Below are positions 1 to 59,400 of a stretch of 64,000 nucleotides of DNA, piece after piece. A program made the position numbers and the translations under genes. Origin of the DNA: Macrostomum hystrix (taxonomy: Eukaryota > Animalia > Platyhelminthes); NCBI GenBank assembly GCA_950097015.1, contig CATNEN010000035.1:248001-312000 (forward strand), read 5' to 3'. The notes beneath the pieces were generated by a model, which was not told where the DNA came from, ran no database searches, and saw only the letters and a list, made by a program, of their open reading frames with translations. Each line of letters begins with the position of its first letter. Position 1 is the first letter of the stretch.

Positions 1-3000
1 ATCCTCTAAGAAAAAATGTTCCATGACCCGGCCATCAGTGTTGTCAGCCGTGCGGCTGCTCTCCATCCTGTCATGCAGCATCTGCAGCGAGCTCCTCACG
101 AGACTCACAAGGTTTTCCGGCTTCCACCGCTCTTTTGGTGTCTCTTCTATCATTCGGAACGTGACAGTTTTCACGTGATACGGCTTCACACCTTGCAAAC
201 CGAAACCATCTTTGTGGCAGATCACTTTCTTTACGAGGTACTTGAGCGTGACGAACAGCTGGCCCTGCAGAGTGCTGAGACTTCGCAACATCCGCTTCTC
301 CAGAAAGCTTGTGCTCACTCGGAGCTCCTGGCCTTCTTGATCAGGAGAAGCTGCGTGCACCACGTGACAGGGTGATGAGGTCGAAGTGAGATCGTGGAGG
401 AGTGACTGCATCACGCGCTGAGATATGTTAGAGCTGAGTAGCCGGGGTGGCTCGAGCGGCGCGATGGGAGGGTAGCGGCAGAGGCGGCAGGCGGAGACAT
501 CGTCGATTGCAGGCCTCAGAGCGGCTCCAGGAGAGGGTTTGGCAGGATTGGAAGCTGCAATGGAAAGTTGGGAATACTTGCATAGGTTTGGTTTAAATTT
601 CAGAACAAACAGATGGATACTGCTTAAAACCGTGTTGATATTTTTTAAAAGAGAAAAGAGACTCACCAAAACCAGAGCACCGAAGATGGCCATTGCTCAG
701 CTCATGCTGGTCGCTCGATTCGACGCACTCGCACAGGCCTCTGACATGGTACAGTCGGCCAGGAATCAGACTCATCATGTCGATGTCGGACTCGATGTCG
801 ATTCTTCCGTCGAGGGTTCGTAGGTTGTTGCCCCAGCCTTCCGAGAAGCTGCCAACTACAAAAACTGCATCAGAATTCAGTCTCTGCCTCTGGATCTCCT
901 GCAAGACATCAGCAATTGCAATCTGCAGAGCAGCTCTGGAGTCTACGAACCCTGACTGAGTAAGCGCAGAGTGCAGCTGTTGGCTCAGCTCCGAGTCGCT
1001 GGGGTAGTCTCTAAAATGAAATTCAGTTGCAACAACAAAAAACTGTCAATGAATCAGATTGCGCAATCTCCATCACAAAGTATACAAACTTACACTAACA
1101 CCGATTCAAAATGTGAATCTGCAGACATCGATTCAAAGTAGATGTTTCCATGTGCCATGACAAGGGAGTCGAAAACTTTCTGGTGATTATTCGCGAATGC
1201 AATATTGATTGGCAATTGGCCAGTGCTCGTTTTTAAATTAAAATCTGCCTGTGCCCTGATGAGAGCATCCACGACATTCTGATGGCCATTCTCTGATGCG
1301 ATATAAAGAGGTGACTCGCCGGATTTTGTTTGAAGATCAACATCAGCTTGAGCTTTGATTAGCAATTCCACGACTTTCTGATGACAATACTGTGACGCAA
1401 TGTATAGAGCTGATTCACCAGTGTTTGATTGAAGATTAACGTCGGCCTGAGCTTTGATGAGCAAGTCCACGACACCCTGATGACCATCGTATGACGCGAT
1501 GCAGAGTGGCGAGAAGCCGTTGACCTTCTCTTGAAGATTGACGTCACCTTGTGATTTGATGAGTGAATCCACGACACTCAGGTGACCATTCTGTGATGCG
1601 ATGTAGATAGGCGAGGAACCGTTGATACTCTCTTGCAGATTGACTTGGGCTTGCGCTTTCAGGAGAAGGTTCACGACTCTCTGATGACCATTCTGTGACG
1701 CAATGTGAAGCGGTGAGCAGCCATTGACTTTATTTCGAAGATTGACGTCGGCGTGTGCTTGAAGGAGTGAATCAACAACTTTCTGATGGCCGTTCTGTGA
1801 CGCAATTAGGAGAGGGGACTCTCCAGCATTTCTTTGAAGATTGACATTCGCTTGTGACTTAATTAGCGATTCCACGACTTTCTGATGGCCATTCTGTGAC
1901 GCCATGTATAGAGGTGAAGAGCCGTTATTTTTCTCTTGCAAATTGACATCGGCTTGGGCCTTAATGAGCAAGTCCACGACCTTCTGGTGACCACTTTGAG
2001 ATGCAACAATGAGAGGCGAGGAGCCGGTATTTGTTTGAAGATTAACATCGGCTTGTGCATTGATGAGCACGTTCACGACTTTCTGGTGACCATGATGTGA
2101 CGCAATGTACAACGCTGAGGAACCATTGCTTGCTTGAAGATTGACATCGGCTTGTGCATTGATGAGTGTGCTTACAACTTTCTGATGACCGTTCTGTGCT
2201 GCGATGTAGAGAGGTGACTCGCCAGCGTGTCCTTGAAGATTAATGTCGGCTTGTTCACTGATTAGTAAATCGACAATTTTCCGATGACCATAATGTGACG
2301 CAATGAAAAGAGGTGAGTACCCGTTTCTTTCCCGAAGATTGACATCAGCCTGTGCCTTTATGAGCGAATCAACTACTTTTTGGTGACCATTCTGTGATGC
2401 AATGAAGAGTGGTGAAGAACCTTTAACGTTGTCTTTGTGATTAATATCAACACTTGCCTCAATGAGTAGATCAGCAACTTCATGATGGCCATTCTGAGAC
2501 GCAATTAAAAGAGGCGAAAAACCGTTGACTCCATGAATATTCACTTCAGCCTGTGCTTTGATTAGTAATTTCGCAACACTCTGATGCCCATGGTGTGAGG
2601 CAACGCAGAGAGGCGAGAAGCCGTTCACATTCTCTGGTAGATTTACTTCAGCTTGTGCTTTGATGAGCGAGCTTACAATTTTTTTATGACCGTACTGCGA
2701 CGCAATGTGAAGTGGTGCTTCACCTGTGTTACGTTGAAGGTTAACATCAGCTTGCGACTTGAGGAGTGAGTCAACAACTTTCTGGTGGCCATTTTGTGAG
2801 GCAAGTATAAGTGGAGTGGAGCCCGTGTTGGTTTGAAGATTAACATCGGCTTGTGCTTTGATGAGCGCATGAACGACCTTCTGCTTGCCCTTTTGTGATG
2901 CAATTAGGACAGCCGTCTCGCCAGAGTTTCCTTGAAGATTGACGTCGGCTTTTGCTTTGATGAGCAAGTGCACAATTCTTTTAAAACCATTCTGTGATGC

Positions 3001-3900
3001 AATGTAGAGTGGAGAGGAGCCATTCACTTTCTCTTGAAGATTGACGTCGGCTTGCGCTCTAATAAGTAAATCAACCACTTTGTGATGACCATAGTTTGAC
3101 GCAATTAGGATAGACGAGCAGCCATCCACTTCTTGGACATCGACATCCGCCTGTGCTTTGATGAGTGCTTCAACCACTTTTTCATGACCATTCTCTGATG
3201 CAATGTAGATAGGTGACTCACCAGTGCTTGTTTGAAGATTAACATCGACCTGAGCTTTAGTAAGTGCATTCACGACTTTCCGATGACGATTTAGTGATGC
3301 AATATAGAGAGGTGACTCCCCAGAGCTTGTTTGAAGATTAATATTGGCCTGAGCTTTAGTAAGTACATTCACGACTTTCTGAAATCCATTCTCTGATGCA
3401 GTGTAGAGAGGCGACTCGCCAGTGCTTGTTTGAATATTGACATCGGCCTGCGCTTTGATGAGGGCATTCACAACTTTCTGATGACCATTTTGCGATGCAA
3501 CGTAGAGAGGTGAGCAACCGTCAATTTCTTGAAGATTGACGTCGGCTTGGGCTTTGAGTAGTGAGTCAACGACTTTCAAATGACCATTTTGCGATGCAAT
3601 GTAGAGAGGTGAGGAGCCATCCATGTCTTGAAGATCGACGTCGGCTTTGGCTTGTATGAATGCTTCCACAATTCTAGTTTTTCCGATAGCGCATGCAAGA
3701 TGCAAGGGAGAAAATCTGTGCCCTTCAATGAAAATCAGTCTATTTCGGTTTGATGATGTCTGCAGATACTGGTGAATGATGTTCATGCTCTCGGTTTTTA
3801 CGGCTTCATGAATCTCGCGGTCAGTGACATGAGATCCGTTGGTAAATGTCTGCATTAGTGCTACAATAATCATTTGCAGCGCTCTCCATAGAGTCTCCAT
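1..3900 (-). CDS. Ankyrin-repeat / Mab-21 (cGAS-like receptor, cGLR) fusion protein; 3 exons (3900-1094, 1010-667, 554-<1), 3' end beyond window
   Basis: Exon 1 holds about 26 ANK repeats (SPLxIASxxGHxKVVxxLxxAQADVNLQ). The donor GT|GTAAGT at 1094/1093 (phase 2) joins the acceptor TTTTAG|A at 1011/1010 in frame, giving ...ESVLVDYPSDSELSQQL. The donor TTTG|GTGAGT at 667/666 (phase 1) joins TTGCAG|CT at 555/554. The spliced frame is open to base 1 (1,235 aa in window). It carries VVGSFSEG, ESDIDMM, IDDVSAC..YP, LRVSTSFLEKRML, FVTLKYLVK, PYHVKTVTF and MEHFFL, the ordered motifs of the Mab-21/cGAS fold. Confidence 0.9.
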
Positions 3901-6224
3901 GGTAAGAAACTAAAGACTTATACTTGTGTGCGACTTCAACAAATCGATGCTGAAAAGACAGTCTGTTGAAATTGCTTACAGTAAAGAGCTTGAAACGTAA
4001 AACGTCAAATATATTTGGCTGCACACGAAAAAAGACTGCTTGTGCAATTATACCTTTATGAACAATGTTTATGCGATTGTGAATGTACACTGCTGCATTG
4101 TTCATTGTACTGTACACTTGAGCGCTTTATGCTCTTGGAATGTAGGCTGAATGGTTGCGTCTTCTCTCTCCTTATTTATCGTTTGCCTAGGTAGATACGA
4201 TAGTGTTGGGTGAATGAAGTGCACTGAAATTCATTGCACTGCACATTAGCTGCAATTCTATTTCATAGCCATTGTTTTCTAACGCTATTCTGCAGCTGGA
4301 AGTTCCAGTCGTGCAGTCGTGAACTTCAGAAGCTCCCAAGCTACACAAAAGTCCAAACTGGAATTCATTAGCATTTAAGTGTATTATTTGAATTGCGTCA
4401 TTTGTCAAACTAAACTTAAAGATTCGAGCATTGATTCGCATTTTGCATTTTCGCCGAGAAATGTCTCCACGTATACCTGTTCCTCAATGCTGCTAATTAC
4501 GGATGAAATTCCTGCTACAGAATCCACCAAAAAGTCGCAGTGAATTGCTTTCCGTTGTTTTAATCAATGCTGTTAAAGCTATTTTTGTCCATGCAGGCAC
4601 AGTTGAGTAGTGATTCGGACCAGTACATAAGTAGCGCTGGTTGCTTCGAATGGCTCTGATAGTGAGGAGGTTCGATTAGTTTTCATTGCGGCTCGTCTTA
4701 GCAGTGAATCGGGACTCGTGCTGCTCTTATTGGGTTAGGTTCGTGAGCAGTAAACTGCTCAAGTAAACTGTTCAAGCAAGATACACAAGTAAGATAAGTG
4801 TGTGTCTTTGTTGCTTGTCACTCTAACTTACTGTCCGCTTCTGAGCAGTCTAGAAAACTACGTTTTCACAATCTTGCTGCACAGCCAGAAACATTTCTTC
4901 GTCGTTTTTCATCTGTCAGCAACACTGTTCTCCAATCTATTTGAGCCTGATCCATTTGCAGTCAGATACATATCTTTGAACGATTAATTGTACCATAGTC
5001 CCGTTGTGTATCTTTAGCTTTTCTTTCCCCTAAAAGTTTACCTTTCAGTCTTAAGAAAAGTATTGTATTTGATTAAATGACGAACTAAAATTGACACGCA
5101 CAACTAAGGAGCTCTTCTCGGTGAGTTTTTTCGAGAAGACCGAAAGTTCACCTCAAACAGACTTCGCTGTACTGCTTCTCATACCAGGCATTTAGAGACA
5201 CTGTGCGAGTATTTAGAGACACAAATCGAGTTTCAAAATAAAATTTATTAAAGCGAGACTCAGCGCGCACGGAAGCCATAAGTAAGTGCTCATTGGTCTG
5301 CATTGGTTGCGTTGGATGGCTCTAAGAGTGGGGTAGTGCTAATTGTCTCCGTTTCTTCAACCTGGGGGTCCCGTTGCTATGTGTCTGTCAGGCCATTAGA
5401 TAAGCAGTCTTGAAGAGTTTTGAAAGAGATGGCCTTTTCAGATTATAAGTGTCGAACACTAGCTCTGATGTTTCGCACCATACTACTTAAATTTTCTGCT
5501 TAAGTAGTGCTTTTGGGGAACCCAGAATGTGTAAGAAATTTATTTTTGCGAGCCGTTAAGGATCCGAACAAACCATTGATTGCAACCACTGCTCTACATG
5601 CACCGCTCCACCTTCATGCGAATTGTGCTAACCTGCAAAGGCCCCAACAAAGCAGCCGACATAACCTGCTCGTTCTGCCTAATAGTGCATGTGTTTGAGT
5701 GAGTGCTCAAGACGTTATTATGAGCAGAATCGGTCTCTCTAACTGCGGGTCTAGTGTCACCGAATTATTTACTAGTGCCCAAACAGCTCTCATGCAGCCA
5801 GATAATTCATCGCCTCGGTCCTGAGAAACCGATCGGACACGATTGGACTAGGTCGACTTCTCAGAAATCCAGGAGTACAAGAGTCGTACTTGCTCATCAG
5901 GCATTTAGGTCTCTTGGCTTCTGAAAAGACTCTTACAGCACAACAGAAGCAGCGGCTCGCGCACCTGTAGTCCCAGTGACGACGGCTTTCACGCACACGA
6001 ACTTCCAAAGCAGATTCTGAACAACTTAAAGAGATCGTAGAGACAATTCTGGTTCTCTTGAAGGCAGACAATAAAAATTTCCTGAGCACTTCTAAACACA
6101 ATAAATAGACAACCTTTTATTTTCGCTACATAAAAGGCCGCCCTTTACAAACACCAACAAAATTAGCACACGGAACACGACAACAAAAGAGTGGAATAAT
6201 GAGAACAATGAGTTTTATGAGTAG

Positions 6225-10650: not shown

Positions 10651-13600
10651 CTAAACGGCGTCAACCACGGACCACTCTTTGCTGCCGTCGGCGTCAACCT
10701 CGCGCATCTCCGAATCTGGCTTGGCTGCCGCGTCTTCAGTGGCTTCCGTGTTGGCCGCGGTTGCTGAATTGTCTTTGGCTTCAGCGGCCGCTTTACCGGC
10801 GGCGGCGGCTTTGGCTGCCTCGGCGGCGGCTTCGCGTTGTTTTTTAGCCTCCTCGGCGGCTTTGCGCTCGGCTTCGAACAGGTCAACAAACGGCTGGCGG
10901 GCGGCGTTCACCGCTTCTAGTGCGTCGCGCAGCAGTTTGCGATATTCAGCGTAGCCGCGCCTGAGGGCGGGTTGGAAAAACAGTAGAGACAGACAGACAG
11001 ACAGACCGACAGACAGACAGACAGAAAGACAGACAGACAGAGAGACAGACAGACAGACAGCCTGACAGGTGCTCACTTATGCTCGGCCCCCTCCTGAGTG
11101 AGCGCCTCGGCTCGCTCTTTTAGTTCGGCGATTTCTTTCTCGGCCTGACGGCGTCGCATGTCGGCCTCCTCGAGTGTGGCAGCGGCCAGCGGAGCCTCCT
11201 GGAGGCACAAGCGCTCGCGTGCTTCAACAGCTGCCATAGTGGCCTCGGCGGCGCGGAGTAGGCGAAGACGTAGGCCGGCGTCGCCACCGCCGCCATCGGC
11301 TGGGACGGGCGGACAGCCGCCGGCGCGCTGGAACACAATGGCCGACGCCTGCGAGTCGTCGTCGATTTCGCCTGCAGCTGATTCGGCCGAGTAGCCGTCC
11401 CAGGCGTTGGCCGCAGCAACGGCCCGATCTGTGAGGCGACGATAGCGCAAGGAGCTTGCGCCGTCGCTGCCTGCGGCCTGATTGAAGGGGAATAGGGATT
11501 AAACTGGGTGTAGGGGGAGTAAAGGATTAGATATCCCACTGGTTGGAGTATTTGTAATCCTCCGGTTAGAGCGTCGTTAATCCTCCGGTCAGATAATCGC
11601 TAATCCTCCGGTCAGATAATCCCTAATCCTTCGGTCAGAGCATCCCTAATCCTCCGGTCAGAGAATCCCTAATCCTTCGGTCAGAGAACCCCTAATCCTC
11701 CGGTCAGAGAATCCCTAATCCTCGAATTATAGAATCCCCAATCCTCGAATTATAGAATCCCTAATCTTCAGGTCAGAGAATCCCTAATCCTCCGGTCAGA
11801 GAATCCCTAATCCTCCGGTCAGAGAATCCCTAATCCTCCGGTCAGAGAATTCCTAATCCTCCGGTCAGAGCATCCCTAATCCTCCGGTCAGAGAATCCCT
11901 AATCCTCCGGTCAGAGAATCCCTAATCCTCGAGTTATAGAATACCTACCTAATCCTCCGGTCAGAGAATCCCTTATCCTCCGGTCAGATAATCGCTAATC
12001 CTCCGGTCAGAGAATCCCCAATCCTCGAATTATAGAATCCCCAATCCTCGAATTATAGAATCCCTAATCTTCAGGTCAGAGAATCCCTAATCCTCCGGTC
12101 AGAGAATCCCTAATCCTCCGGTCAGAGAATCCCTAATCCTCCGGTCAGAGAATTCCTAATCCTCCGGTCAGAGCATCCCTAATCCTCCGGTCAGAGAATC
12201 CCTAATCCTCCGGTCAGAGAATCCCTAATCCTCGAGTTATAGAATACCTACCTAATCCTCCGGTCAGAGAATCCCTTATCCTCCGGTCAGATAATCCCTA
12301 ATCCTCTGGTCAGAGTATCCCTAATCCTATGGTCAGAGCATCCCTAATCCTCCGGTCAGAGCATCCCTATTCCTCGTGTTATAGAATCCTAATACTCTGT
12401 TAAACTTAGCAGTAAAAACCAAACCTTGTCAATCCATTTGCGTATCTGGGACCGGCTGTGAAGCAGGCCCAGAGACAGGACTAGTTCTTCGATGTCGCGG
12501 GCAGCCAACTGGCCAGTGCGGCCCTGATCAAAGAACTCAAAGGCCTGCAGCAGCGCCGGGCGCACAGTTCGATTTAGACCGGTGGAGCCTTCAACAGCGG
12601 CGGTCGACTCTTCTAAGCGAGGCCGCTTGCGCTGCGATTCGCCATCGTCGTCAGAGGCTTCCGGGGCTCTAAAGATACAGTTGACGGATTGAAAATGGCT
12701 AATCTTAGGGTGTGATAATTGCTAATCTATGGGTTTGGATACTCTTATCTAGGAGTTTGAGACCCGTAGAACTACCAAGGGGGGAAATTGCCCCCCCCCC
12801 GACAATTTTTCTGCTGCACCCGAACGGAGTAACGCAAGCACACGAAACTCAAGAACACGGGCCAACTTTTTTGCGCATTTTCTGAAACAAGAATCAAGTC
12901 GCCAGCTCTTCAGACCGTCGAGATATTCTATGTTTCTGGCTGAAGGTCAGATTTTTCCGTTAGAGCTAGTGTATTTCATACACCCCTATGCACGAATTAG
13001 CACTGCGCCTCAGTGCGGCCTTGCCAGGCCTTCAAATTTATCAGCATGTCACCCGAATGTGCCTGCATCATCTCCGTCTACGGTGGTCACCTACCTTTAT
13101 CTAGACGGACTCCTTCAAAGGCTACCAAAGGTGGAAGTAGGCCACTACGGACACCCTGACGCGAATTTCTCCAATTTCACTGATCAAGCTTAAATATGAG
13201 GCGCAGCTCAACCACAGGACACCCTCGTCTAGTCTGTCAACCAATCAGTCACTACCCCACGCCATTAGCATTCAGGAACTTCCAAAAACAATGTTTGTAT
13301 AAAAACGGGCGGCAAAATGGCTACTGTTAATCTAATCAATTAATAATTTACAATCCTACGAATTTAGACGAGTTCGGATTGAAAATCGTTCGTCATTTGA
13401 GTCGGTAAATCGAATTTATTATAACGCAAAGTTTCCTTATCTAACAGAAAGCATTTCGTCACTCACGCCCCCGCGCTGCCGTCGGCTACTTCGCAATCGT
13501 CGGCCAGAGCCGCGCACAGCGTGTAGGCGCAGTCGCGCACCAGCATCTCGTGGAACTGCTCGCAGAATAGGGCCATCTCGAAGGCGGACTCGCGGCCGCC

Positions 13601-16600
13601 GCTTTCAAGCCGATGAGCCAGCAGCTGACTGAGGCTGGCGGATTCCAGGCGCAGTCCGGCCGGATTTGGCGGTCCTGCTGGGCCAGGCGAGCAGAGCGGG
13701 CGAGTCCGGCAGGCGATGATGGCGCCTGATGCGCTCCTGCTCGCGCTCGGATAGTGGCGAGACCCGGGGCTTCTCCTTGTCTCTGTGCGTAGGGATTCAG
13801 CACGGGATTGCGTGTGATTCAGTATGGGATTGCGTGTGATTCAGTACGGGATTGCGTGTGATTGGTTATGGGATTGCGTGTGATTGAGTATGGGATTGCG
13901 TGTGATTGAGTATGGGATTGCGTGTGATTGGTTATGGGATTGCGTGTGATTGAGTATGGGATTGCGTGTGATTGAGTATGGGATTGCGTGTGATTGAGTA
14001 TGGGATTGCGTGTGATTGAGTATGGGATTGCGTGTGATTCAGTATGGGATTGCGTGTGATTGAGTATGGGATTGCGTGTGATTCAGTATGGGATTGCGTG
14101 TGATTCAGTATGGGATTGCGTGTGGGTCAATATGGGAATTAATGTGGGTCAATATGGGAATTAATGTGGGTCAATATGGGATTTAGTGTGAGTCAATATG
14201 GGATTTCATGTGGGTCAATACGGAATTTCATGCGGGTCAATAGGGCATTTCACGTGGGTCAATATGGGATTGAGTGTGGGTCAATATGGAATTTAGTGTG
14301 GGTCAATATGGGACTGAATCTGGGTTAATATGGCATTTCATGTGGGTCAATAGGGAATTTCACGTGGGTCAATATGGGGTTGAGTGTGGGTCAATATGGG
14401 ATTTGGTGTGAGTCAATATGGGATTTGGTGAGTCCATATGGGATTTGGTGTGAGTCAATATGGGATTTGGTGTGAGTCAATATGGGATTTGGTGTGGGTC
14501 AATATGGGATTTGGTGTGAGTCAATATGGGATTTGGTGTGAGTCAATATGGGATTTGGTGTGGGTCAATATGGGATTTGGTGTGAGTCAATATGGGATTT
14601 AGTGTGAGTCAATAATTAAAAATTGCTCGTCTTTCTAAACAAGAACCAAATAAGCAACCTACTCAGTCTTTTCCGCATCGTCAGCAGTCGCCTTGTCTTC
14701 CTCGGGAGCAGCGACAATCTCCTTCATCTCAGAGTCGGCAGGGGCGCTCTCAGCCTCAGCTTCTTTGGCCTCGGCTTCGGCTCGCAGGGCCTCCTCCAGG
14801 CGGGCCACCAGCTGGGCTTTCAGGCCGCGAGAGTCACGACCGCGCGCTTCCAGCTCTCGACGCAGGTCGGCCACCTTCATCGAGTGCAGGTCCGTCAGCG
14901 GACCGCCAGAAGCTGTCGAAGCCTGCGACTGCTGCTGGCCGCTGATGTTGGACGCGTCAGCTTCGGTATCATCGGCTTCTTCAGGCTTCTGCCATTGTTA
15001 AAGAGGAGAACAATGTGAGAGTAGGCAATATATGAAAAAACGCTTTAATAGCTCGGATAATCGTTTGGGTGAACTGGCTAATCTCAGTCTCACTATTTAT
15101 TCTCAGTCAAATTATATGTTTTCAGATTCTCACTATCGATTATTTATAAGTCTCCCAATCTAATATCAAAGCCTCCCAATCTAATCTCAAAGCCTCCCTA
15201 TCTAATCTCAAAGCCTCCTTATCGAATCTCAAAGCCTTCCTATCTAATCTCAAAGCCTTCCTATCTAATCTCAAAGCCTCCCTATCTAATCTCAAAGCCT
15301 CCCAATCTAATCTCAAAGCCTCCCTATCGAATCTCAAAGCCTCCCTATCGAATCTCAAAGCCTCCCTATCTAATCTCAAAGCCTCCCAATCTAATCTCAA
15401 AGCCTCCCTATCTAATCTCAAAGCCTCCCAATCTAATCTCAAAGCCTCCCTATCTAATCTCAAAGCCTCCCTATCTAATCTCAAAGCCTTCCTATCTAAT
15501 CTCAAAGCCTCCCTATCTAATTTCAAAGCCTCCCTATCTAATCTCAAAGCCTTCCTATCTAATCTCAAAGCATTCCAATCTAATCTCAAAGCCTCCCTAT
15601 CTAATCTCAAAGCCTCCCTATCTAATCTCAAAGCCTCCCTATCTAATCTCAAAGCCTTCCTATCTAATCTCAAAGCCTCCCTATCTAATCTCAAAGCCTC
15701 CCTATCTAATCTCAAAGCCTCCCAATCTAATCTCAAAGCCTTCCTATCTAATCTCAAAGCCTCCCTATCTTATCTCAAAGCCTCCCTATCTAATCTCAAA
15801 GCCTTCCTATCTAATCTCAAAGCCTGCCTATCTATTCTAAGAGTCCCACTATCTATTCTAAGAGTCCCACTATCTATTCTAAGAGTCTCACTATCTATTC
15901 TAAGAGTCTCACTATCTATTCTAAGAGTCTCACGATCTATTCTAAGAGTCTTACTATCTATTCTAAGAGTCTCACTTATCTATTCTAAGAGTTTACTAAA
16001 TATTCCCAGTATCACAATCTATAATTTTTTGTCTCACTATCTAACCAGAGTCTCATTCCTCAATCTTAGTTAATTAGCACTTAATTAACAATTATAAGCC
16101 GACACTAGAATAAACAAAATTATCGAATTTGCACCTTGGCATTTTCGCCAGCATCAGTTTCCGTAGCTTCGGCGCCACCAGCGGCAGCCACCTCATTGTC
16201 ATCAACAGCAGCCTCATCCTTCTCTTCAGATTTTTGCTGAGGTGGCGGCGGTGGCGGCGGCGGCGGATAGATCAGAGCTTCAACGCGCTGATTGATAATG
16301 TCCCTGAGCTTAGTCCACTGTTGGTCTTCGGGCACAGCGGTCCACACATCCGGCAGGAAGTAGGTGACAGTCTCCAGGCGAGGCAAAGAGGACGACTTGT
16401 TGCCGTCCGAGTTTGAGTGGTGACGCGGCTCGCGGTAATAGTGCAGCTCCATGAACTTGTACCTTTGTGGGAGAGTTGCAGCAATGGGATCCAAGCTTTA
16501 GGAACGTCTGAAGAATCAGGAACCAAAGCTTCACAAGAGCCTAAATCAATATTTAAGCCGATAATTATCCAAGAAATATAATAAAGCCGATATGTATCGA

Positions 16601-19600
16601 AAAACAGACGACAACAAACCAGATTTGAATATAGAAACTTTTGATTAGGACTAGCCATTTAGCCACCTCTGGGTGGCCTTAATCCCCTTAGCAATGGAGT
16701 TAAGCTTATTAGAAATATGTGTGCCGATTCAGGTAACTCTGGCATCTTCTGGTGAAGGAACGCTGAAAATTGGTTGAGCCATTTGCGAGAAAATCTATTA
16801 CAAGCAAGCAAGATTTTCACTATTACTCGTAGAATAGTGGATGAAAAAGATGTATCGAAACTTCTAATAAGACGCGAACTGTATCTTTTATCAGCTCCTG
16901 CGCCCTGGAAATGATCAATCAAAATGTCCACGTAGCAGAAATTGTCCTCCACTCGGACAGCCAGGCGGCGATCCACGCACACCTGCTCGCGCACAGTCCT
17001 CGACTGCGTCGCGCAACTCAACCGCTTAGGTAACCATAACAAGGTGTCCCTAAGGTGGATTACAGGGCACTCTGGCCACCCTGGTAACGAATTGGCCGAC
17101 AGCCTCGCCAAGGCCGGTTCGACGGGTTCGCTTTTTGGCCCCCGTGCCTGCGGTCTCCACCCCTACCGCCGTCGTCACCACACGGATTAACCAGTGACAG
17201 GTGGATCAACACCGCCGATTGTCGGCAGTCTCGCGCTGCTGTTCCTTGTCCCTCCACTGCCCTTCGCAAAGCCCTGCTTGGACTTAACCGCAGGGACATC
17301 AGGGCAGTCACCATGGCCCTCTGTGGCCATGGCTGGTTCGCTAGGCACCGCTTCCTGCAAGGCAAAATCCGCAGTGAGGAATGCCCTTTCTGCCTCTCCT
17401 ACGTTGAGGATGCAGAGCATTTTATTTGCAACTTCCCGCCTTCACTCAGGACAGGCTCACAGGCTCGACCCAAACCCGGATCACTCCGAAGTTTTCAGGC
17501 CTGAGAACATCTACCAGCTCGTCCGTTACCTAAGGGCCACCGGGCGAGCGACTCTCCACCTCCTGGACTCTCCGGAGGAGGACCGCGCTGTGGACGCCGG
17601 GCATCACCGGATCTCCCTGCGCGACACCACAGCTTTAGCTGCCCGTGGTCGCCAGGGGCTAGCGGAATGGGCGGCAACGCCTCCCCGCTGCATCCGAAGG
17701 ATGCCCCCCCTGCAGCTAAGTCAAGTAAGTAAGAACTGTTGACAGAATTGACAGAAAATTTAGATGCGAATTGCGCCGATATGTATCGAAAACACAGACG
17801 AGAACTAAGCCGTAAAGAAACCAAAGATGATAAAATAACCGAAATTTATAGAAATGACACATACGAACTGAGCCTATATGTATCGAAATCAACAAAAATG
17901 GAACTGAAACGTTATGCTATTATTCTAAAACAGCATCAAAACAGCACTTACCAGGTGCTGCAGCCAGATAGATCTAGGCCGGCCAGCCGCCTAGCGTGCC
18001 GCACCGCGGTATTCACCAGCACCATCGGGTCGCCTTCGACATCTTCACCGTCCACAGACGGACTCCAGGGTCCGCCAATAGCCAGCGGATCTAGACTAGA
18101 CGTAGTTGATGAAGTAGATTTGCCTTCGCTGCCAACGTAGGCGCAGAGAAAGCGCAGCACGCTGGCCAGATTCGTGCAGCGCTCGCGTGACTCTGTGGGC
18201 TGCTGGGCCAGCGAGCAAGTCTGCTGGTACAGCTCGGCCAGGGTCGGACAGGACAGGAGCATCACTTTGGCCGAGTAGCGATAATCCTGGCATTGGTTGG
18301 ATTTTGTTGAGATCAAATTTAATATTAATTAATTTCGTTATAGAAAAACCGAACCTCTCATTTTAAAGTGGCACATCACACATAAAAGTGCTTGTTTGCC
18401 TGTCAATATGGCGCTTTGCCGTATCGAAATGGCACCTCGCTTAATAAAATGGCACCTCGCTTAATAAAATGGCACCTCGCTTAATAAAATGGCACCTCGC
18501 TTAATAAAATGGCACATCGCTTAATAAAATTACACATCGCTTAATAAAATGGCACATCGCTTAATAAAATGGCACATCGCTTAATAAAATGGCACATCGC
18601 TTAATAAAATGGCACATCGCTTAATAAAATGGCACCTCGCTTAATAAAATGACACCTCGCTTAATAAAATGACACATCGCTTAATAAAATGGCACCTCGC
18701 TTAATAAAATGGCACCTCGCTTAATAAAATGGCACATCGCTTAATAAAATTACACATCGCTTAATAAAATGGCACATCGCTTAATAAAATGGCACCTCGC
18801 TTAATAAAATGGCACATCGCTTCTTAAAATGGCACCTCGCTTAATAAAATGGCACCTCGCTTAATAAAATGACACCTCGCTTAATAAAATGACACCTCGC
18901 TTAATAAAATGGCACATCGCTTAATAAAAATTACACATCGCTTAATAAAATGGCACCTCGCTTAATAAAATGGCACCTCGCTTAATAAAATGGCGCGTCG
19001 CTCTACAAAATAACAACCCTGACCCTGATCGAAAAAATGGCACCTGGATAAAAAATGGCACCCCAAATCAACAAAAAGGTCCTCTGTTTATTAAGATGGC
19101 ACTTCGCTTTTAGGTTATATAATATTGGGACTCCGATTATTAAACGAATTAAAATGCACAACTAAAATGCAGTCTGCTGCATCACAGACCTGATCGGATG
19201 GCTCCAGCACTGGCGCATCAGTATTCCCAGTTAGAGCCGACCATTCGTCCAAAGTAAGCGGATCTACTTCGCGAGAAAACACATGATAATTCACTGCGCG
19301 ACAGCCGAATCTAAGCGGACTACCGGCCGGGAAGGCGGCCGACCAGCCGTTGGTGACGTGGAACAGCTCCGAGGGCGGGTGAAGCCGAGGAAATCGTTGG
19401 CGCAGCTCAACAACGGAGAGTTCAGGCAGGCCGAGAACCCGGTGCGGCACAGGGGAGGCGCCGGCGGCATGGTATACGGCAGGCGGAGCGCCAGATCGGT
19501 GCGAGACATCGCCGCGACGACCGCTGGCCTGGGGGCGAAGGAAACAATAGTACAACAGTAGCAATAGATAGATCTAGATAGATAGACGAAAGGCTGCGTA

Positions 19601-20267
19601 CAGTTGGTTGTTCAGTCCATTTAGGGTGCAGTACAATATTTTTTGCTCGATAATAATCTCGACGTGATAGAGATTCGAACTCCAGAACTCTCAAAAAAAG
19701 TTATAGACTCATTTATTCACATGTATTTCATAGTAATTTAACTGATTCAAACTGTGGTTACATAGGCGGTGAGTGGCAGAGCGGTTAATGCGTTTGCCTC
19801 TCGCACCACATTTAGTTAAGGCTTGGGGGCTTGTCTTGCAATTTACGCCCTTTAGGGCCAACCTCCAAGGCACAGTGAGGTTGTACACTGCCTGACGATG
19901 AGAAAGTCAGGACAGATGTACACAGTGGACACCTGTGTGAGCGTGTGCCTGCGTACAGTATCTGTGTCCGTGTGTGCTCAGGAGTCAGCGCAGCCCTTAT
20001 GAGTTTATTATAATTATTAACTCTGGTTACCTGGCTGCCGCCGCTGCGATGACGCGATTCGATTCGCACAGATCTGGCTGTCCACTTGTCGGGCTTATCG
20101 GGCGTGTAATCAGCGGTGACAGACACATGGTCACCAATTCGTGGCTGACCACCGCTTACAGTTGAGCGCATAAATAGGATGTCCTCATTTATGTAGCCGA
20201 ACTTTTCAAACAATTTAGTAATGGTACCTCGTGTTGTCTTATGGGTTTGCGGTCGTGTTCCAAGCAT
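10651..20267 (-). CDS. CCAR1: Cell division cycle and apoptosis regulator 1 (CCAR1/DBC1 family); 9 exons: 20267-20031, 19528-19190, 18286-17952, 16462-16135, 14988-14663, 13782-13467, 12668-12425, 11477-11077, 10960-10651
   Basis: Domains appear in CCAR1 order: S1-like ([19 protein letters not shown]...KWTARSV), [19 protein letters not shown]1 domain (YSAKVMLL...[12 protein letters not shown]...W|YKFMELHY...[11 protein letters not shown]), SAP domain ([28 protein letters not shown]), SLSQLLAHR...[16 protein letters not shown]-hand-like ([16 protein letters not shown]) and a coiled-coil tail. All introns are GT-AG with matching phases, but exon 6 is 1 nt too long (see findings). Confidence 0.9.
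10986..11060. repeat. (CAGA)n microsatellite in the last CCAR1 intron
   Basis: Direct reading. Confidence 0.95.
11555..12385. repeat. 23-bp minisatellite (TAATCCTCCGGTCAGAGAATCCC), about 36 units, with a 303-bp higher-order duplication
   Basis: Direct reading; the variant pattern at about 11721 recurs at about 12024. Confidence 0.95.
13803..14612. repeat. 22-bp minisatellite, about 37 units (GGGATTGCGTGTGATTGAGTAT grading to GGGATTTGGTGTGAGTCAATAT)
   Basis: Direct reading. Confidence 0.95.
15148..15990. repeat. 21-bp minisatellites: TCTAATCTCAAAGCCTCCCTA (about 32 units) followed by TCTATTCTAAGAGTCTCACTA (about 7 units)
   Basis: Direct reading. Confidence 0.95.
16938..17735 (+). mobile_element. 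5'-truncated, decayed non-LTR retrotransposon 3' end (RNase H + Cys/His knuckle; I/LOA-like group), antisense in CCAR1 intron 3
   Basis: RNase H motifs [12 protein letters not shown] and [22 protein letters not shown] (frameshifted relative to each other), then [10 protein letters not shown]...[16 protein letters not shown], ending in a TAAG-repeat tail. Confidence 0.85.
18427..18992. repeat. 20-bp minisatellite (GCTTAATAAAATGGCACCTC), about 28 units
   Basis: Direct reading; AAATGGCAC words continue in both flanks. Confidence 0.95.
19765..20020 (+). mobile_element. SINE family A copy (tRNA-derived; internal deletions) in CCAR1 intron 1
   Basis: A-box-like TGGCAGAGCGG head, shared body and ATT-rich tail. 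Confidence 0.8.
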
Positions 20268-28924: not shown

Positions 28925-29420
28925 ACAATCATGATATTCTGGGATGAGAAATCCATGAGATTGTGGGATGAGAAATCCATGAGATTGTGAGATGAGAAAA
29001 TCATGATATTTTGGGATGAGAAATCCATGAGATTGTGGGATGAGAAATCCATGAGATTGTGGGATGAGAAATCCATGATGTTGTGGGATGAGAAATTTAT
29101 GATATTGTGGGGTGAGAAATCCATGATATTGTGGGGTCAGAAATCCATGATATTGTGGGATGAGAAATCCATGAGATTGTGGGATGAGAAATCCATGAGA
29201 TTGTGAGATGAGAAATCCATGAGATTGTGAGATGAGAAATCCATGAGATTGTGGGATGAGAAATCCATGATATTGTGGGATGAGAAATCCATGAGATTGT
29301 GGGATGAGAAATCCATGAGATTGTGGGATGAGAAATCCATGATATTGTGGGATGAGAAATTCATGATATTGTGGGATGAGAAATGCATGAGGTTATAAGC
29401 TGAGAAATCCATGAGATTCT
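28925..29420. repeat. 24-bp minisatellite (GAGAAATCCATGAGATTGTGGGAT), about 20 units
   Basis: Direct reading. Confidence 0.95.
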
Positions 29421-30039
29421 GGGTGAGTATTCCAGAACATGACGGAATGGAGTTCGGTTACTTGGCTAGTAAGTTTATGACATGGCACATCCCTTTGCAG
29501 GTAAAAATTTTGCAGGTAAATCATTAAATAGGACAGTCGTTAGTAATGTATTTTATGACATCAATTAGACTACGTCTATTGAACAGGTTTCTTGTTCTCT
29601 CCATTAAAGTCAATCAGTGTGTACTTTTTGCTTGGTTGCGTGAGTAAATTCAGCCCGCAAAATCATCCGCTGACTTAAAAAAACTCCCTACGACATTATG
29701 TGAAATAATGATATGTACTTTAGCAGCGAGGCTATTGTGCTCATTTGGACATTTTGGTCAAGAACCACTTGTGCTTAGCTAGTAGTTAGTCGTTAAACAA
29801 TGAAATTGCTGCGTCAGAATTGATACAGCCTCAAGGCCTGGTTGTGGAGCCGCTGGCAGTGATCCTATTATGTCAAAAAAGCAAACTTTTTTGTCAAAAT
29901 TGAAGTTGACGCTGTCAAAATAGAATGTAGTTTTTTCCCTCAAAGCGATACGCTGTCGAAATTGATGTGGAGTTTGTTACTATATAAGTTACTGTTGTTC
30001 AAAATTGAGGGTAAAATGGTGTAGCCGACATTTTTACAT

Positions 30040-56400: not shown

Positions 56401-59400
56401 GGCGCTCCTGAGACCCTTCGCCAGCGCCTCCACTCGGAGCTAGAAACTGTCGAGGCTGACTTCCGCGACTTCTGCCGTGAATGCGAGACGGCTCGAGCCG
56501 ACGTCGAAGAGCGTCTGGAACGATTGCATCAGGCAGAGGCGTTGGAATCGCAGCTGGAAGGCTGGCTTGTTGAGCAGGAGCGAGCCGTACGCGAGGCGGC
56601 AACTCCACGAGCCTCGCTGGAAGAGAAGTCTGCACAGCTGACGAGCCTACAGTCTGTCTGCGAGTCGGCTACCGATCGCGAGGCCGAATTCACTCAGCTA
56701 GAAGCCGCACTGGAGGATCTGGAAGCCTCGGGCAGTCAGTCGGCGATCAACTTACTAGCCAAGTACCAGGCGCTCAAGGCGAACAGTCAGCAGGCCGCAG
56801 AGCGCTGCCAGGCTGCAATCGAGGAGCATCGTCGGCTGCAGGACCGACTGTCTGCCGCTGAAGGTGAAGTGGCCGAACTGGAAGCTGAAGCTTCTGGCCT
56901 TGAGACCACCTGCAGCGTGGATGAAATACCTGAGCGTCGTCGCCGAGTCGAGGCTCTTCTAGCCGAGCGAAAGCCCGCGCTGCAGACGTCTTTGCAGGAG
57001 CTGGGCTCTGCAAGCGCCGCGGCGGCCGCCAGCGCCGGTGTTGGCGCCGTCGGTCACGACCAGTTGCGGCGCGAGACCAGGCGCGTTAAATCCAGCTTTG
57101 ACGCCGTCTGCGAGCGTCTTGTGACGCTGCGCCGCGCTCTGGAGCAGCGTGCCGCTCAGGTTGACGATCTGAACGCTCAGCTAAACCGCTTAGCCGTCTG
57201 GATCGCTGAGGCTCGCAACCGTCTCGAAGAGTCTACCAAGCCGCAGGACAGCCTCGACGCTCGCAAGCAGCAGCTGCAGGCTTGCCGGGCTCTGTCCAGT
57301 GAGTTAAATTCTGTTGCTAAGCAACCGCCTGCATTGGAGGAACAGTTGACTTCCCTGGCAAAGGCTGGGCACATCGACGCATCGCAAATGACCGAACGTC
57401 TGGACGAGCTGGCCGTACAGTTGGACGGCATCTCAGCCGAGTTGAAGACGCGCCTCGCCGACTGCGAGGAGGCCGTCCGAGAGCAGGCCGCCTATCGGGA
57501 GGCGCGCGACGAGGCCGACGACTGGGTGACGTCGCTGGCCGAGCGAGTTGAATTCTGCGACGACCTCAGTGGCGATCGGCACGCGCTCGAGGGTCGCCTG
57601 GAACGGCTCAAGGTCAGTTATCATAGCTGTTGGCAGTGGAAAATAAAAAGTTTAAGTATACTCGCTGCGTACAGACAATTCAGGTTGGTCAGGTGGAGTG
57701 AGTATTTGTCAATAGCCCAAGCTTGGGGGGTCGGTGGCAGAGCGGTTAAGGCGTTTGCCTCCCGCTCCACGGTCACTAAGTTCGGCCACATTTATTTGGG
57801 GCGCAGCCGCGAAGAGAAGGCTTGGGTTCTTGTCGTTCAATTTACGCCCTTGTGAGCCAACCTCCAAGGCACAGGTTGAGAAAGTCAGGGCAGATGTGCA
57901 CACATGTGTACTGTATCTGCATGCGTGTGTGCTCAGGAGTCAGCAAAATGGGCATAATTGTCTCCTCGCTGGCTGCGGGTCTAGTGTCACGAAATGATGT
58001 GCCATTGCCCGCAGCCCTCCGCAGATATCATTGGGCATTATCGAAGAAAAATAGAGCTGGTACACTGAAAATTCAAGATATTGTCGGATGTTGATGGACA
58101 AAATTAATTTGACAGTGTTTGACTAAGTCTAACAGAAAAGGATAATTGAGCCTTCGCAAACATAGCTAACTTACGAGCGTAGTAGCTATTTTTTAATTAT
58201 CTTGCTGATGTAAATCATACGAGCTATTTTAATTTCGAATTTACACTTACTGCATTTAACTACGATATGAACACTTAGTTTCTAAGCAATATATATTTTT
58301 TCCTCTCGTTGAGTTTCTGGTGCTTTGAAAGAGCGACAACTTTGTAATTTACTTTATTGCAAAAACCCATTTCCGTTTCAAACAGCTGAGGATTGTAAGG
58401 CTTGGTCAACTTGTTGCACTAAAATAGCACGACTGTGTTTGACTTATCTTGTTTTGCACCATTCTTAGTAAAACTTGCAATCGATCTAGCACGGTAGTTG
58501 ACACCTTCTAGATGACTGAAAATCTTTTGATTACTAAACACTAGTAAATCTTTATGCACGCCCGTACTTGTGCTGCCTGTCATATGTCCCATGGCAAGGA
58601 TATACTAAATACTCGTACGGTAGGATAAACTAATCCACAAGATACCCAGCCATCTACCCAGCCATCTACCCAGCCATCTACCCAACCATCTACCCAGCCA
58701 TCTACCCAGCCATCTACCCAGCCATCTACCCAGCCATCTACCCAGCCATATACCCAACCATCTACCCAGCCATCTACCCAGCCATATACCCAACCATCTA
58801 CCCAGCCATCTACCCAGCCATATACCCAGCCATCTACCCAACCATCTTCCCAGATATCTACCCAGCCATCTTCCCAGCCATCTACCCAACCATCTACCCA
58901 GCCATCTAGTTTTTGCCACTCCGCGGCTTGTCGGTCTGAGCCAGCCAGATAAAAGTTTACGGGCTCCGTCTTCCAGATGCCGGATGTATTGGTTTGCACT
59001 TTTGATTCTCTAACCCAACTCCGTTCTGCGTCCGTTTTACGTCCAAACCATGTCAGACCGTTGCTTGGCTTGTCGTCTGTCACCTTGACAAAAGTGCAGG
59101 TTTTTTAATATCCTTCCTCCATCTGCAGTGGAAAATGTCTGAGACAAGTTTCATTGTGCAACTCAGACGGGTAGTGCGGAAGTCTTAACAGTCGCCTCAA
59201 CTGCTCTATGCCGATGGGGCTCGCTTTACAGCTAGGGCTCCTCTTCTTTCCTCTCCTCTTGACATTCTCCCTATTCTCCCTCACCCTATCAACCCAGGCT
59301 ATGTTTGCCAGGGTCAACACGACAATGCCTGTTCTTCTTCTCTCTGTCTAGCTCACCGCCTCCCCTCTTTGGATGCTGTAAGGTTGGCAAGTTTCATCAC

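Follow-up and report, generated by a model that had tools for sequence, protein, structure and literature searches.

An expressed Macrostomum hystrix gene joining a long ankyrin array to a predicted cGAS/Mab-21-fold nucleotidyltransferase

The DNA considered here, called the window, is a stretch of 64,000 nucleotides from the flatworm Macrostomum hystrix (GenBank assembly GCA_950097015.1, contig CATNEN010000035.1, positions 248,001 to 312,000 of the forward strand). Window positions 1-3989 on the minus strand are the 5′ three quarters of an expressed flatworm gene with three coding exons. It encodes an array of ankyrin (ANK) repeats followed by a predicted nucleotidyltransferase (NTase) of the family that includes the cGAS-like receptors (cGLRs). 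A first-pass annotation, made from the letters alone, had suggested a flatworm-like host, and the nearest relatives of the protein are indeed found in Macrostomum. All features of this gene given below lie on the minus strand.

Gene structure, transcripts and the ankyrin array

In the list of open reading frames (ORFs) the locus appears as a 936-aa ankyrin ORF (1090..3900) beside smaller frames. The stop codon of this ORF, TAA at 1092-1090, lies inside a GTAAGT splice donor (1093-1088), which the first-pass annotation had already read directly from the sequence. It had also proposed that two GT-AG introns, 1011-1093 and 555-666, fuse everything into one frame. The spliced frame (3900-1094, 1010-667 and 554-1) is 3,705 nt or 1,235 codons long, free of stops and still open at position 1. 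Coding exon 1 (1094..3900) begins with an ATG at 3900-3898 and supplies residues 1-935 and two nucleotides of codon 936, comprising an N-terminal peptide, the ankyrin array and a short linker. Intron 1 (1011..1093; 83 nt, GTAAGT..AG, phase 2, acceptor AG at 1012-1011) is followed by coding exon 2 (667..1010; 344 nt), which encodes residues 936-1051 including both split codons and holds the N-terminal lobe of the nucleotidyltransferase, with its GS loop and D-x-D strand. After intron 2 (555..666; 112 nt, GTGAGT..AG, phase 1, acceptor AG at 556-555), coding exon 3 (1..554; residues 1051-1235) encodes the strand with the third catalytic acid and the helix bundle of Mab-21_C; the start of the window truncates it.

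Transcript evidence came from Logan contigs of four public runs (X1-X4) placed on window positions 1-4400, and both proposed junctions are present in them. The junction 1010|1094, with 83 nt skipped and GT..AG on the minus strand, occurs in contigs of X1, X2 and X4, and the junction 554|667, with 112 nt skipped, in contigs of X2, X3 and X4. A single contig (X2 record 3; 1,996 nt) contains 459-554, 667-1010 and 1094-2649, with 2 mismatches, and thus physically joins the ankyrin exon to both downstream exons. Depths in bins agree with zero coverage across both introns, and no intron-retaining contigs were found among the contigs placed on 1-4400. Coverage stops near 3989 and is zero farther upstream, so that the four runs behave as RNA; the 5′ untranslated region (3901..3989) is drawn from this reach of the contigs. 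At the other end the contigs run at least 1,093 nt past window position 1. Summed contig depth rises to 300-1,100 at 2794-3087 and 3529-3675 compared to about 8 elsewhere. This excess is due to contigs that are only 90-95% alike, that is, to numerous or highly expressed ANK paralogues.

A stop codon stands in frame four codons 5′ of the ATG, and the N-terminus METLWRALQ..LMQ is common to the window protein and homologues in Macrostomum lignano; together these indicate that the start at 3900 is sound. The first approximately 17 residues (METLWRALQMIIVALMQ; 3850-3900) are hydrophobic, are kept in the M. lignano homologues (MESLCSSVLRAAVAVLMQ, MSSVWRILQTIATFLMQ) and may form an amphipathic or membrane-associating helix.

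The ankyrin array (1123..3717; residues 62-926) consists of one capping and 25 regular repeats of 33 or 34 aa. This count of 26 was obtained by parsing by hand; the Pfam Ank models give 25 stretches on the 936-aa ORF (E 5e-173), and tandem 33-aa ankyrin repeats (PF00023/PF12796) are thereby recognized. Tandem Repeats Finder describes the same DNA as 23.7 copies of a 99-nt period with 68% matches. Nucleotide identity from repeat to repeat has a mean of 67% and a maximum of 83%, and such low values imply that the array is old and was not recently amplified. The positions of highest entropy lie 3-4 residues before the glycine of the repeat, at the residue after it, and at positions 6, 10, 11, 14, 18 and 19. 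As a matter of description, these are largely the hairpin-tip and first-helix sites of the usual ANK binding face.

The nucleotidyltransferase domain

Relationships of the region encoded by exons 2 and 3 were sought with profiles and with structure models. Exon 3 is matched by Mab-21_C (PF20266; E 1e-4) at 22.8 bits, near the cut-off of 24.1, the domain being cut by the window, and an ESM-Atlas feature search with this exon returned Mab-21 clusters at 0.96. Exon 2 alone gave a weak match to an MTPAP-like palm (E 0.027). A search of the PDB sequences with the nucleotidyltransferase and tail of a homologue as single sequence produced nothing meaningful; the family profile alone worked. That profile (A1), built on 59 family sequences with 19% mean column identity, matched cGLR1 (8gjy) at 2.8e-25, cGAS at approximately 1e-17, MAB21L1 at 2.7e-11 and MB21D2 at 6e-11. 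Its positions 32-326 align to Cv-cGLR1 (8gjw) and 117-334 to 8gjy, which places the homology across both the nucleotidyltransferase core and the C-terminal helix bundle.

An AlphaFold2 model was made, with the A1 alignment, of residues 539-1148 of the M. lignano homologue PAA63984.1 (P0193), whose nucleotidyltransferase is 71% identical to that of the window protein in a gapless alignment. The mean predicted local distance difference test score (pLDDT) was 92.8 and the predicted template-modelling score 0.93. The top 50 PDB matches of this model in Foldseek were all cGAS or Cv-cGLR1. Superposition with VIA-align gave Z scores of 20.1 to cGAS and 19.3 to Cv-cGLR1, covering model residues 14-344 and hence both lobes, with a root-mean-square deviation of about 3.5 Å over about 270 residues. 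Predicted structural homology to cGLR/CD-NTase enzymes was thus found, on the 71%-identical homologue. Taken together, the family profile and the model of the homologue indicate that the C-terminal part is a cGAS/Mab-21-fold nucleotidyltransferase, which agrees with the proposal of the first-pass annotation.

The motifs on which that proposal was founded, GSFSEG, ESDID, IDDVSAC..YP, RVSTSFLEK, LKYL and PYHVK, are all present in the same order and fall in columns that are at least 90% conserved among the 59 members. The GS motif of the activation loop (G989 S990; 848..853) has G in 57/59 and S in 56/59 sequences. The first two catalytic acids, D1011-I-D1013 (779..787; [DE]h[DE]h), are D in 56/59 and 55/59, and the third, D1068 (502..504), is D in 54/59. 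HMMER aligns the column of the third acid with the VDI strand of mouse cGAS. The triad is intact, in line with the catalytically competent cGLR inferred by the first-pass annotation. All 16 near-invariant columns are kept in the window protein, namely these five and 11 more; besides the acids, conservation of at least 90% is seen for the R, S and E of RVSxSFLE, a K, the Y..K of YHVK, a W and an F. The Mab-21_C region (HhH/H2TH-like; 10..246) includes LKYL, YHVK, W1194 and HFF.

Membership in the cGLRs has been defined by the motif h[QT]GS-X8-20-[DE]h[DE]h-X50-90-h[DE]h, by homology across both lobes and by AlphaFold homology (Li et al., 2023; PMC9980059). In the window protein D1011-I-D1013-M begins 20 residues past S990 and I1067-D1068 sits 52 residues past M1014, both within the published spacings; the residue after D1068 is D rather than hydrophobic. 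When a profile of the N-terminal lobe alone was run against the PDB, it found generic nucleotidyltransferases such as MNT and GLD2, all non-significant (E>0.2), in which the D-x-D motif is aligned with GS..SDiD of other NTase-fold proteins, again at non-significant E-values. The full-length profile, the superposition of the folds and the spacing of the motifs are therefore the grounds on which GS and D-x-D are equated with those of cGAS.

A set of histidines and cysteines, H1024-x4-C1029-x-C1031-x12-H1044 (686..748), is kept in 39-44 of the 47 members of the Macrostomum clade. It is joined by C1076, C1113, H1114 and H1230, and the whole set is conserved in 37-45 of the 47. It is absent from the distant relatives that combine Mab-21 with TPR. 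Judged from these patterns of conservation, the set may be a clade-specific candidate metal site, located elsewhere than the zinc thumb of cGAS.

Relatives, the C-terminal tail and the rest of the window

When exon 3 was used as a phmmer query against 1.84 billion representatives, 174 proteins were matched, and 70 of these had E<=1e-10. The proteins are typically 900-1,500 aa long, with the matching region 500-900 residues in. All 20 of the representatives that were looked up are from M. lignano, most with ANK repeats N-terminal to the nucleotidyltransferase, under names such as 'hypothetical', 'ANK_REP_REGION' and 'Mab-21-like HhH/H2TH-like domain-containing'. The best match to the ankyrin ORF, also from M. 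lignano, is 60% identical, and the window protein itself is absent from the 5.8-billion-protein set. The best nucleotidyltransferase match is the modelled homologue PAA63984.1 (Mlig016300g1; 1,148 aa), whose 71% identity extends over 299 aa and across both junctions. The position and phase of intron 2 are identical in the two genes. At the M. lignano locus the last exon is uninterrupted for 490 aa up to the stop, a length that fits the transcript of at least 1,093 nt past the window start. The first-pass annotation had described the fusion as hidden by splicing; this does not extend to the public record, since the M. lignano annotations already model it as a three-exon gene. In a rough FastTree tree, which carries no support values, the window domain falls within the crown group of the M. 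lignano paralogues, none of which is a clean one-to-one orthologue. When the flanks of the M. lignano homologue (6 kb) were compared with the window by tblastx, no match was found. A cadherin gene adjoins this closest homologue (NIVC01001795.1, 1-4653).

Nearly all full-length members of the family have about 300 further residues after the Mab-21_C bundle, and by homology the window gene would likewise continue, beyond the window, into a family-specific tail of about this length. The model of the tail has a pLDDT of 89 and consists of helical hairpins and a small sheet. No Pfam family was found in the tails of 45 members, and no PDB fold matched (best E 0.23, TM<0.35). Against the clusters of the AlphaFold database (AFDB) the tail gave eight matches at E<=4e-5, all others being at E>=0.06. 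Only these eight are taken as meaningful. Where an accession allowed identification, the match is a member of the same M. lignano family or bears a Mab-21 name; two are nameless and one has an unrelated automatic name.

Elsewhere in the window, long GC-rich ORFs of 557, 1187, 316, 376, 430, 565 and 279 aa on the plus strand (38916-63200) are exons of a giant nesprin-type spectrin-repeat gene (Spectrin_SYNE1, E 1e-53; Spectrin, E 5e-29). A 151-aa ORF at 19812-20267 on the minus strand matches Pfam S1-like (PF14444, E 1e-14) and is probably an exon of another gene. Mutually unrelated minisatellites lie at 11555-12397, 13804-14614, 15148-15986, 18427-19002, 28930-29434 and 58643-58908, with units of 12-24 bp in 21-40 copies each and 86-93% matches; several of them produce spurious repetitive ORFs such as 'EALRLDR' and 'GWVD'. 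The GC content of the window ranges from 34% to 66% in 2-kb steps, and its GC-rich blocks coincide with the nesprin-like exons.

Possible function and comparison with known systems

The firm part of the account is that the gene is spliced and expressed, that its fold is assigned as above, and that the GS loop and all three catalytic acids are kept. As a whole the gene is probably best explained as an expressed fusion of 26 ankyrin repeats with a cGLR, coding for an active sensor of the cGLR type. Such a protein would consist of the short conserved N-terminal peptide, the repeats, the nucleotidyltransferase and the tail of about 300 aa. The enzyme would be inactive in the absence of a ligand, and ligand binding would switch on the synthesis of a nucleotide second messenger from nucleoside triphosphates. 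The long, surface-diversified ankyrin solenoid would recognize the ligand, more likely a protein or another non-nucleic-acid molecule, or would hold the enzyme in check, or both, autoinhibition being equally possible. The first-pass annotation had proposed that the array may sense a ligand, possibly a protein, or may inhibit the active cGLR to which it is joined, which is plausible. The variability at the hairpin tips and adjacent positions was counted in favor of the reading as a whole. Nucleic-acid-responsive cGLRs have a high isoelectric point (pI) (Li et al., 2023; PMC9980059), whereas that of the window nucleotidyltransferase is neutral to acidic at 6.1; since no nucleic-acid response is recorded for the homologues either, a non-nucleic-acid trigger acting through the ankyrin repeats is the most economical assumption.

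Several observations weigh against this account. The match to Mab-21 models expected by the first-pass annotation was borne out for the helix bundle, with Mab-21_C at or below its cut-off in the Macrostomum clade, but not for the Mab-21 nucleotidyltransferase model: neither exon 2 nor any of five M. lignano homologues is matched by PF03281, and in this family it matches solely the distant Mab21-TPR relatives. It was the homologue whose structure was modelled; the window protein itself is incomplete, being cut by the window start. The window protein reads V-V-G989-S990, with V in the [QT] position of the published motif; M. lignano proteins that have M, L or F there were nevertheless accepted (Li et al., 2023; PMC9980059). 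The role given to the ankyrin array is purely inferred, and no member of the family has a reported enzymatic activity. Five M. lignano nucleotidyltransferase domains (Table S3, #89-93) were cloned for a screen of 140 enzymes with a pool of nucleic-acid pathogen-associated molecular patterns, and the note by which 15 selected enzymes are marked as active is missing for all five (Li et al., 2023; PMC9980059). One of them, PAA45980.1 (P0168), is a relative of the window's domain. The missing note fits inactive proteins equally well. Finally, cGAS and STING were reported to be lost in flatworms, based on Schistosoma (Wu et al., 2014).

The main rival is that the protein is a catalytically silent scaffold of the Mab-21 type, in which the fold has a structural or regulatory function, as proposed for MAB21L1/2, and the ankyrin repeats serve unrelated protein-protein interactions. 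The five M. lignano homologues that lack an 'active' note in the published screen would suit a silent protein, no receptor is known in flatworms, and profile and structure both match MAB21L1 and MB21D2 significantly as well. Yet cGLR1 and cGAS score 7-14 orders of magnitude better than these two proteins, and at least 90% of the 59 sequences, which have so little else in common, retain the GS motif and the three acids, a pattern that is hard to explain if there is no selection on catalysis. We regard a silent scaffold as unlikely. Retained catalysis might also serve another chemistry, such as the formation of linear 2′-5′ oligonucleotides as by OAS, RNA 3′ tailing, or the nucleotidylylation of a protein presented by the ankyrin repeats. 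The weak MTPAP-like palm match of exon 2 and the weak generic nucleotidyltransferase matches of the N-terminal lobe point in this direction, and some screened cGLRs yielded products that matched no known standard (Li et al., 2023; PMC9980059). The C-terminal lobe, however, is specifically Mab-21_C/cGAS-like, both lobes of the caged architecture superpose together on cGAS, and no PAP-associated or OAS1_C signal was found, so that an enzyme of this kind seems quite improbable.

The ankyrin domain of RNase L binds 2-5A. By analogy, the array might itself be the receptor of a nucleotide messenger and amplify or relay the signal of other cGLRs, of which a genome with many paralogues could provide a supply. 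Neither sequence nor structure gave evidence of a nucleotide pocket in the array, and 26 repeats are far above the need of such a site; this role is very unlikely. Scarcely any weight is left for a decaying or mis-assembled locus with frames joined by chance. No stop interrupts the 1,235 codons of the frame, the alignment to the M. lignano homologue has no gap, one intron position is shared with it, and the independent runs show exact GT-AG junctions with no intron-retaining contigs among them. For the window copy, a pseudogene or chance joining was rejected on the transcript contigs that carry these junctions.

According to the literature 'most platyhelminthes' lack cGLRs, and the phylum is usually cited as having lost cGAS-STING; Macrostomum is an exception with a large expansion of ankyrin-fused cGLRs. 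The window copy provides a transcript-verified gene model from a second species. Its exon structure, catalytic residues and N-terminal peptide are conserved across species, which supports function and gives a clean design for constructs. In M. lignano the family comprises at least 70 clusters at 50% identity, a size that would suit a repertoire of diversified receptors. A more far-reaching and doubtful proposal is that the Macrostomum proteins are diversified receptors whose ankyrin repeats would see pathogen proteins or other non-nucleic-acid ligands, that they would signal with a nucleotide messenger via a receptor other than canonical STING, and that the tail and the His/Cys set would be part of a new wiring.

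Outside Macrostomum the nearest relatives (E 1e-10 to 1e-4) are Mab-21 + TPR proteins of about 700 aa from ENA assemblies (P0074, P0098 and others). In these proteins the triad is the same and Mab-21_C is followed by a helical extension. They differ in having no ankyrin array, in a recognizable C-terminal TPR and in both Pfam Mab-21 domains being above cut-off, and their identity to the window domain is 17-21%. MAB21L1 (5eog) and MB21D2 (7lt1), which share the fold, are single-domain proteins with the much weaker profile E-values given above. Human and mouse cGAS and Cv-cGLR1 of Crassostrea virginica (8gjw) share the two-lobe caged fold, the GS / D-x-D / D triad and, in the same order as in the window family, motifs resembling RxSxSxxE, LKYL, YHxK and FF(I/L)P(D/E). 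Identity to them is 14-18%, V replaces [QT] before GS, the pI of the window nucleotidyltransferase is 6.1, and the window protein adds an N-terminal ankyrin array and, by homology, a C-terminal tail. The zinc thumb of cGAS was not detected in the window nucleotidyltransferase, whose His/Cys set is placed between the second and third catalytic strands.

The M. lignano paralogues (PAA63984.1, PAA88786.1 and PAA45980.1) are the closest known proteins, although no public protein is closer to the window protein than approximately 71% in the nucleotidyltransferase or 60% in the ankyrin repeats. They have the same ankyrin array, nucleotidyltransferase (61-71% identical) and tail of about 300 aa. Their coding sequence is likewise divided into three exons, intron 2 has the identical position and phase, and the N-terminal peptide and catalytic residues are the same. 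The first-pass annotation knew of no characterization of such a receptor in a flatworm-like host, but the published census of cGLRs already covers both this type of fusion and the M. lignano family, and the window gene founds no new category. Among the cGLRs, 87% have no extra domain, and some carry ANK or TPR modules (Fig. 1C); ANK- and death-domain-fused cGLRs occur in Stylophora pistillata, and fusions with Ank_2 in M. lignano (PAA67649, PAA58690, PAA68676, PAA86972 and PAA45980; Table S2), the species from which the five domains were cloned (Li et al., 2023; PMC9980059). With these fusions, for which the paper gives no activity, ligand or product, the window protein shares the cGLR core and the ankyrin repeats. 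It differs in the unusual length of its array, 26 repeats, and in the private C-terminal domain that the Macrostomum clade appears to have added.

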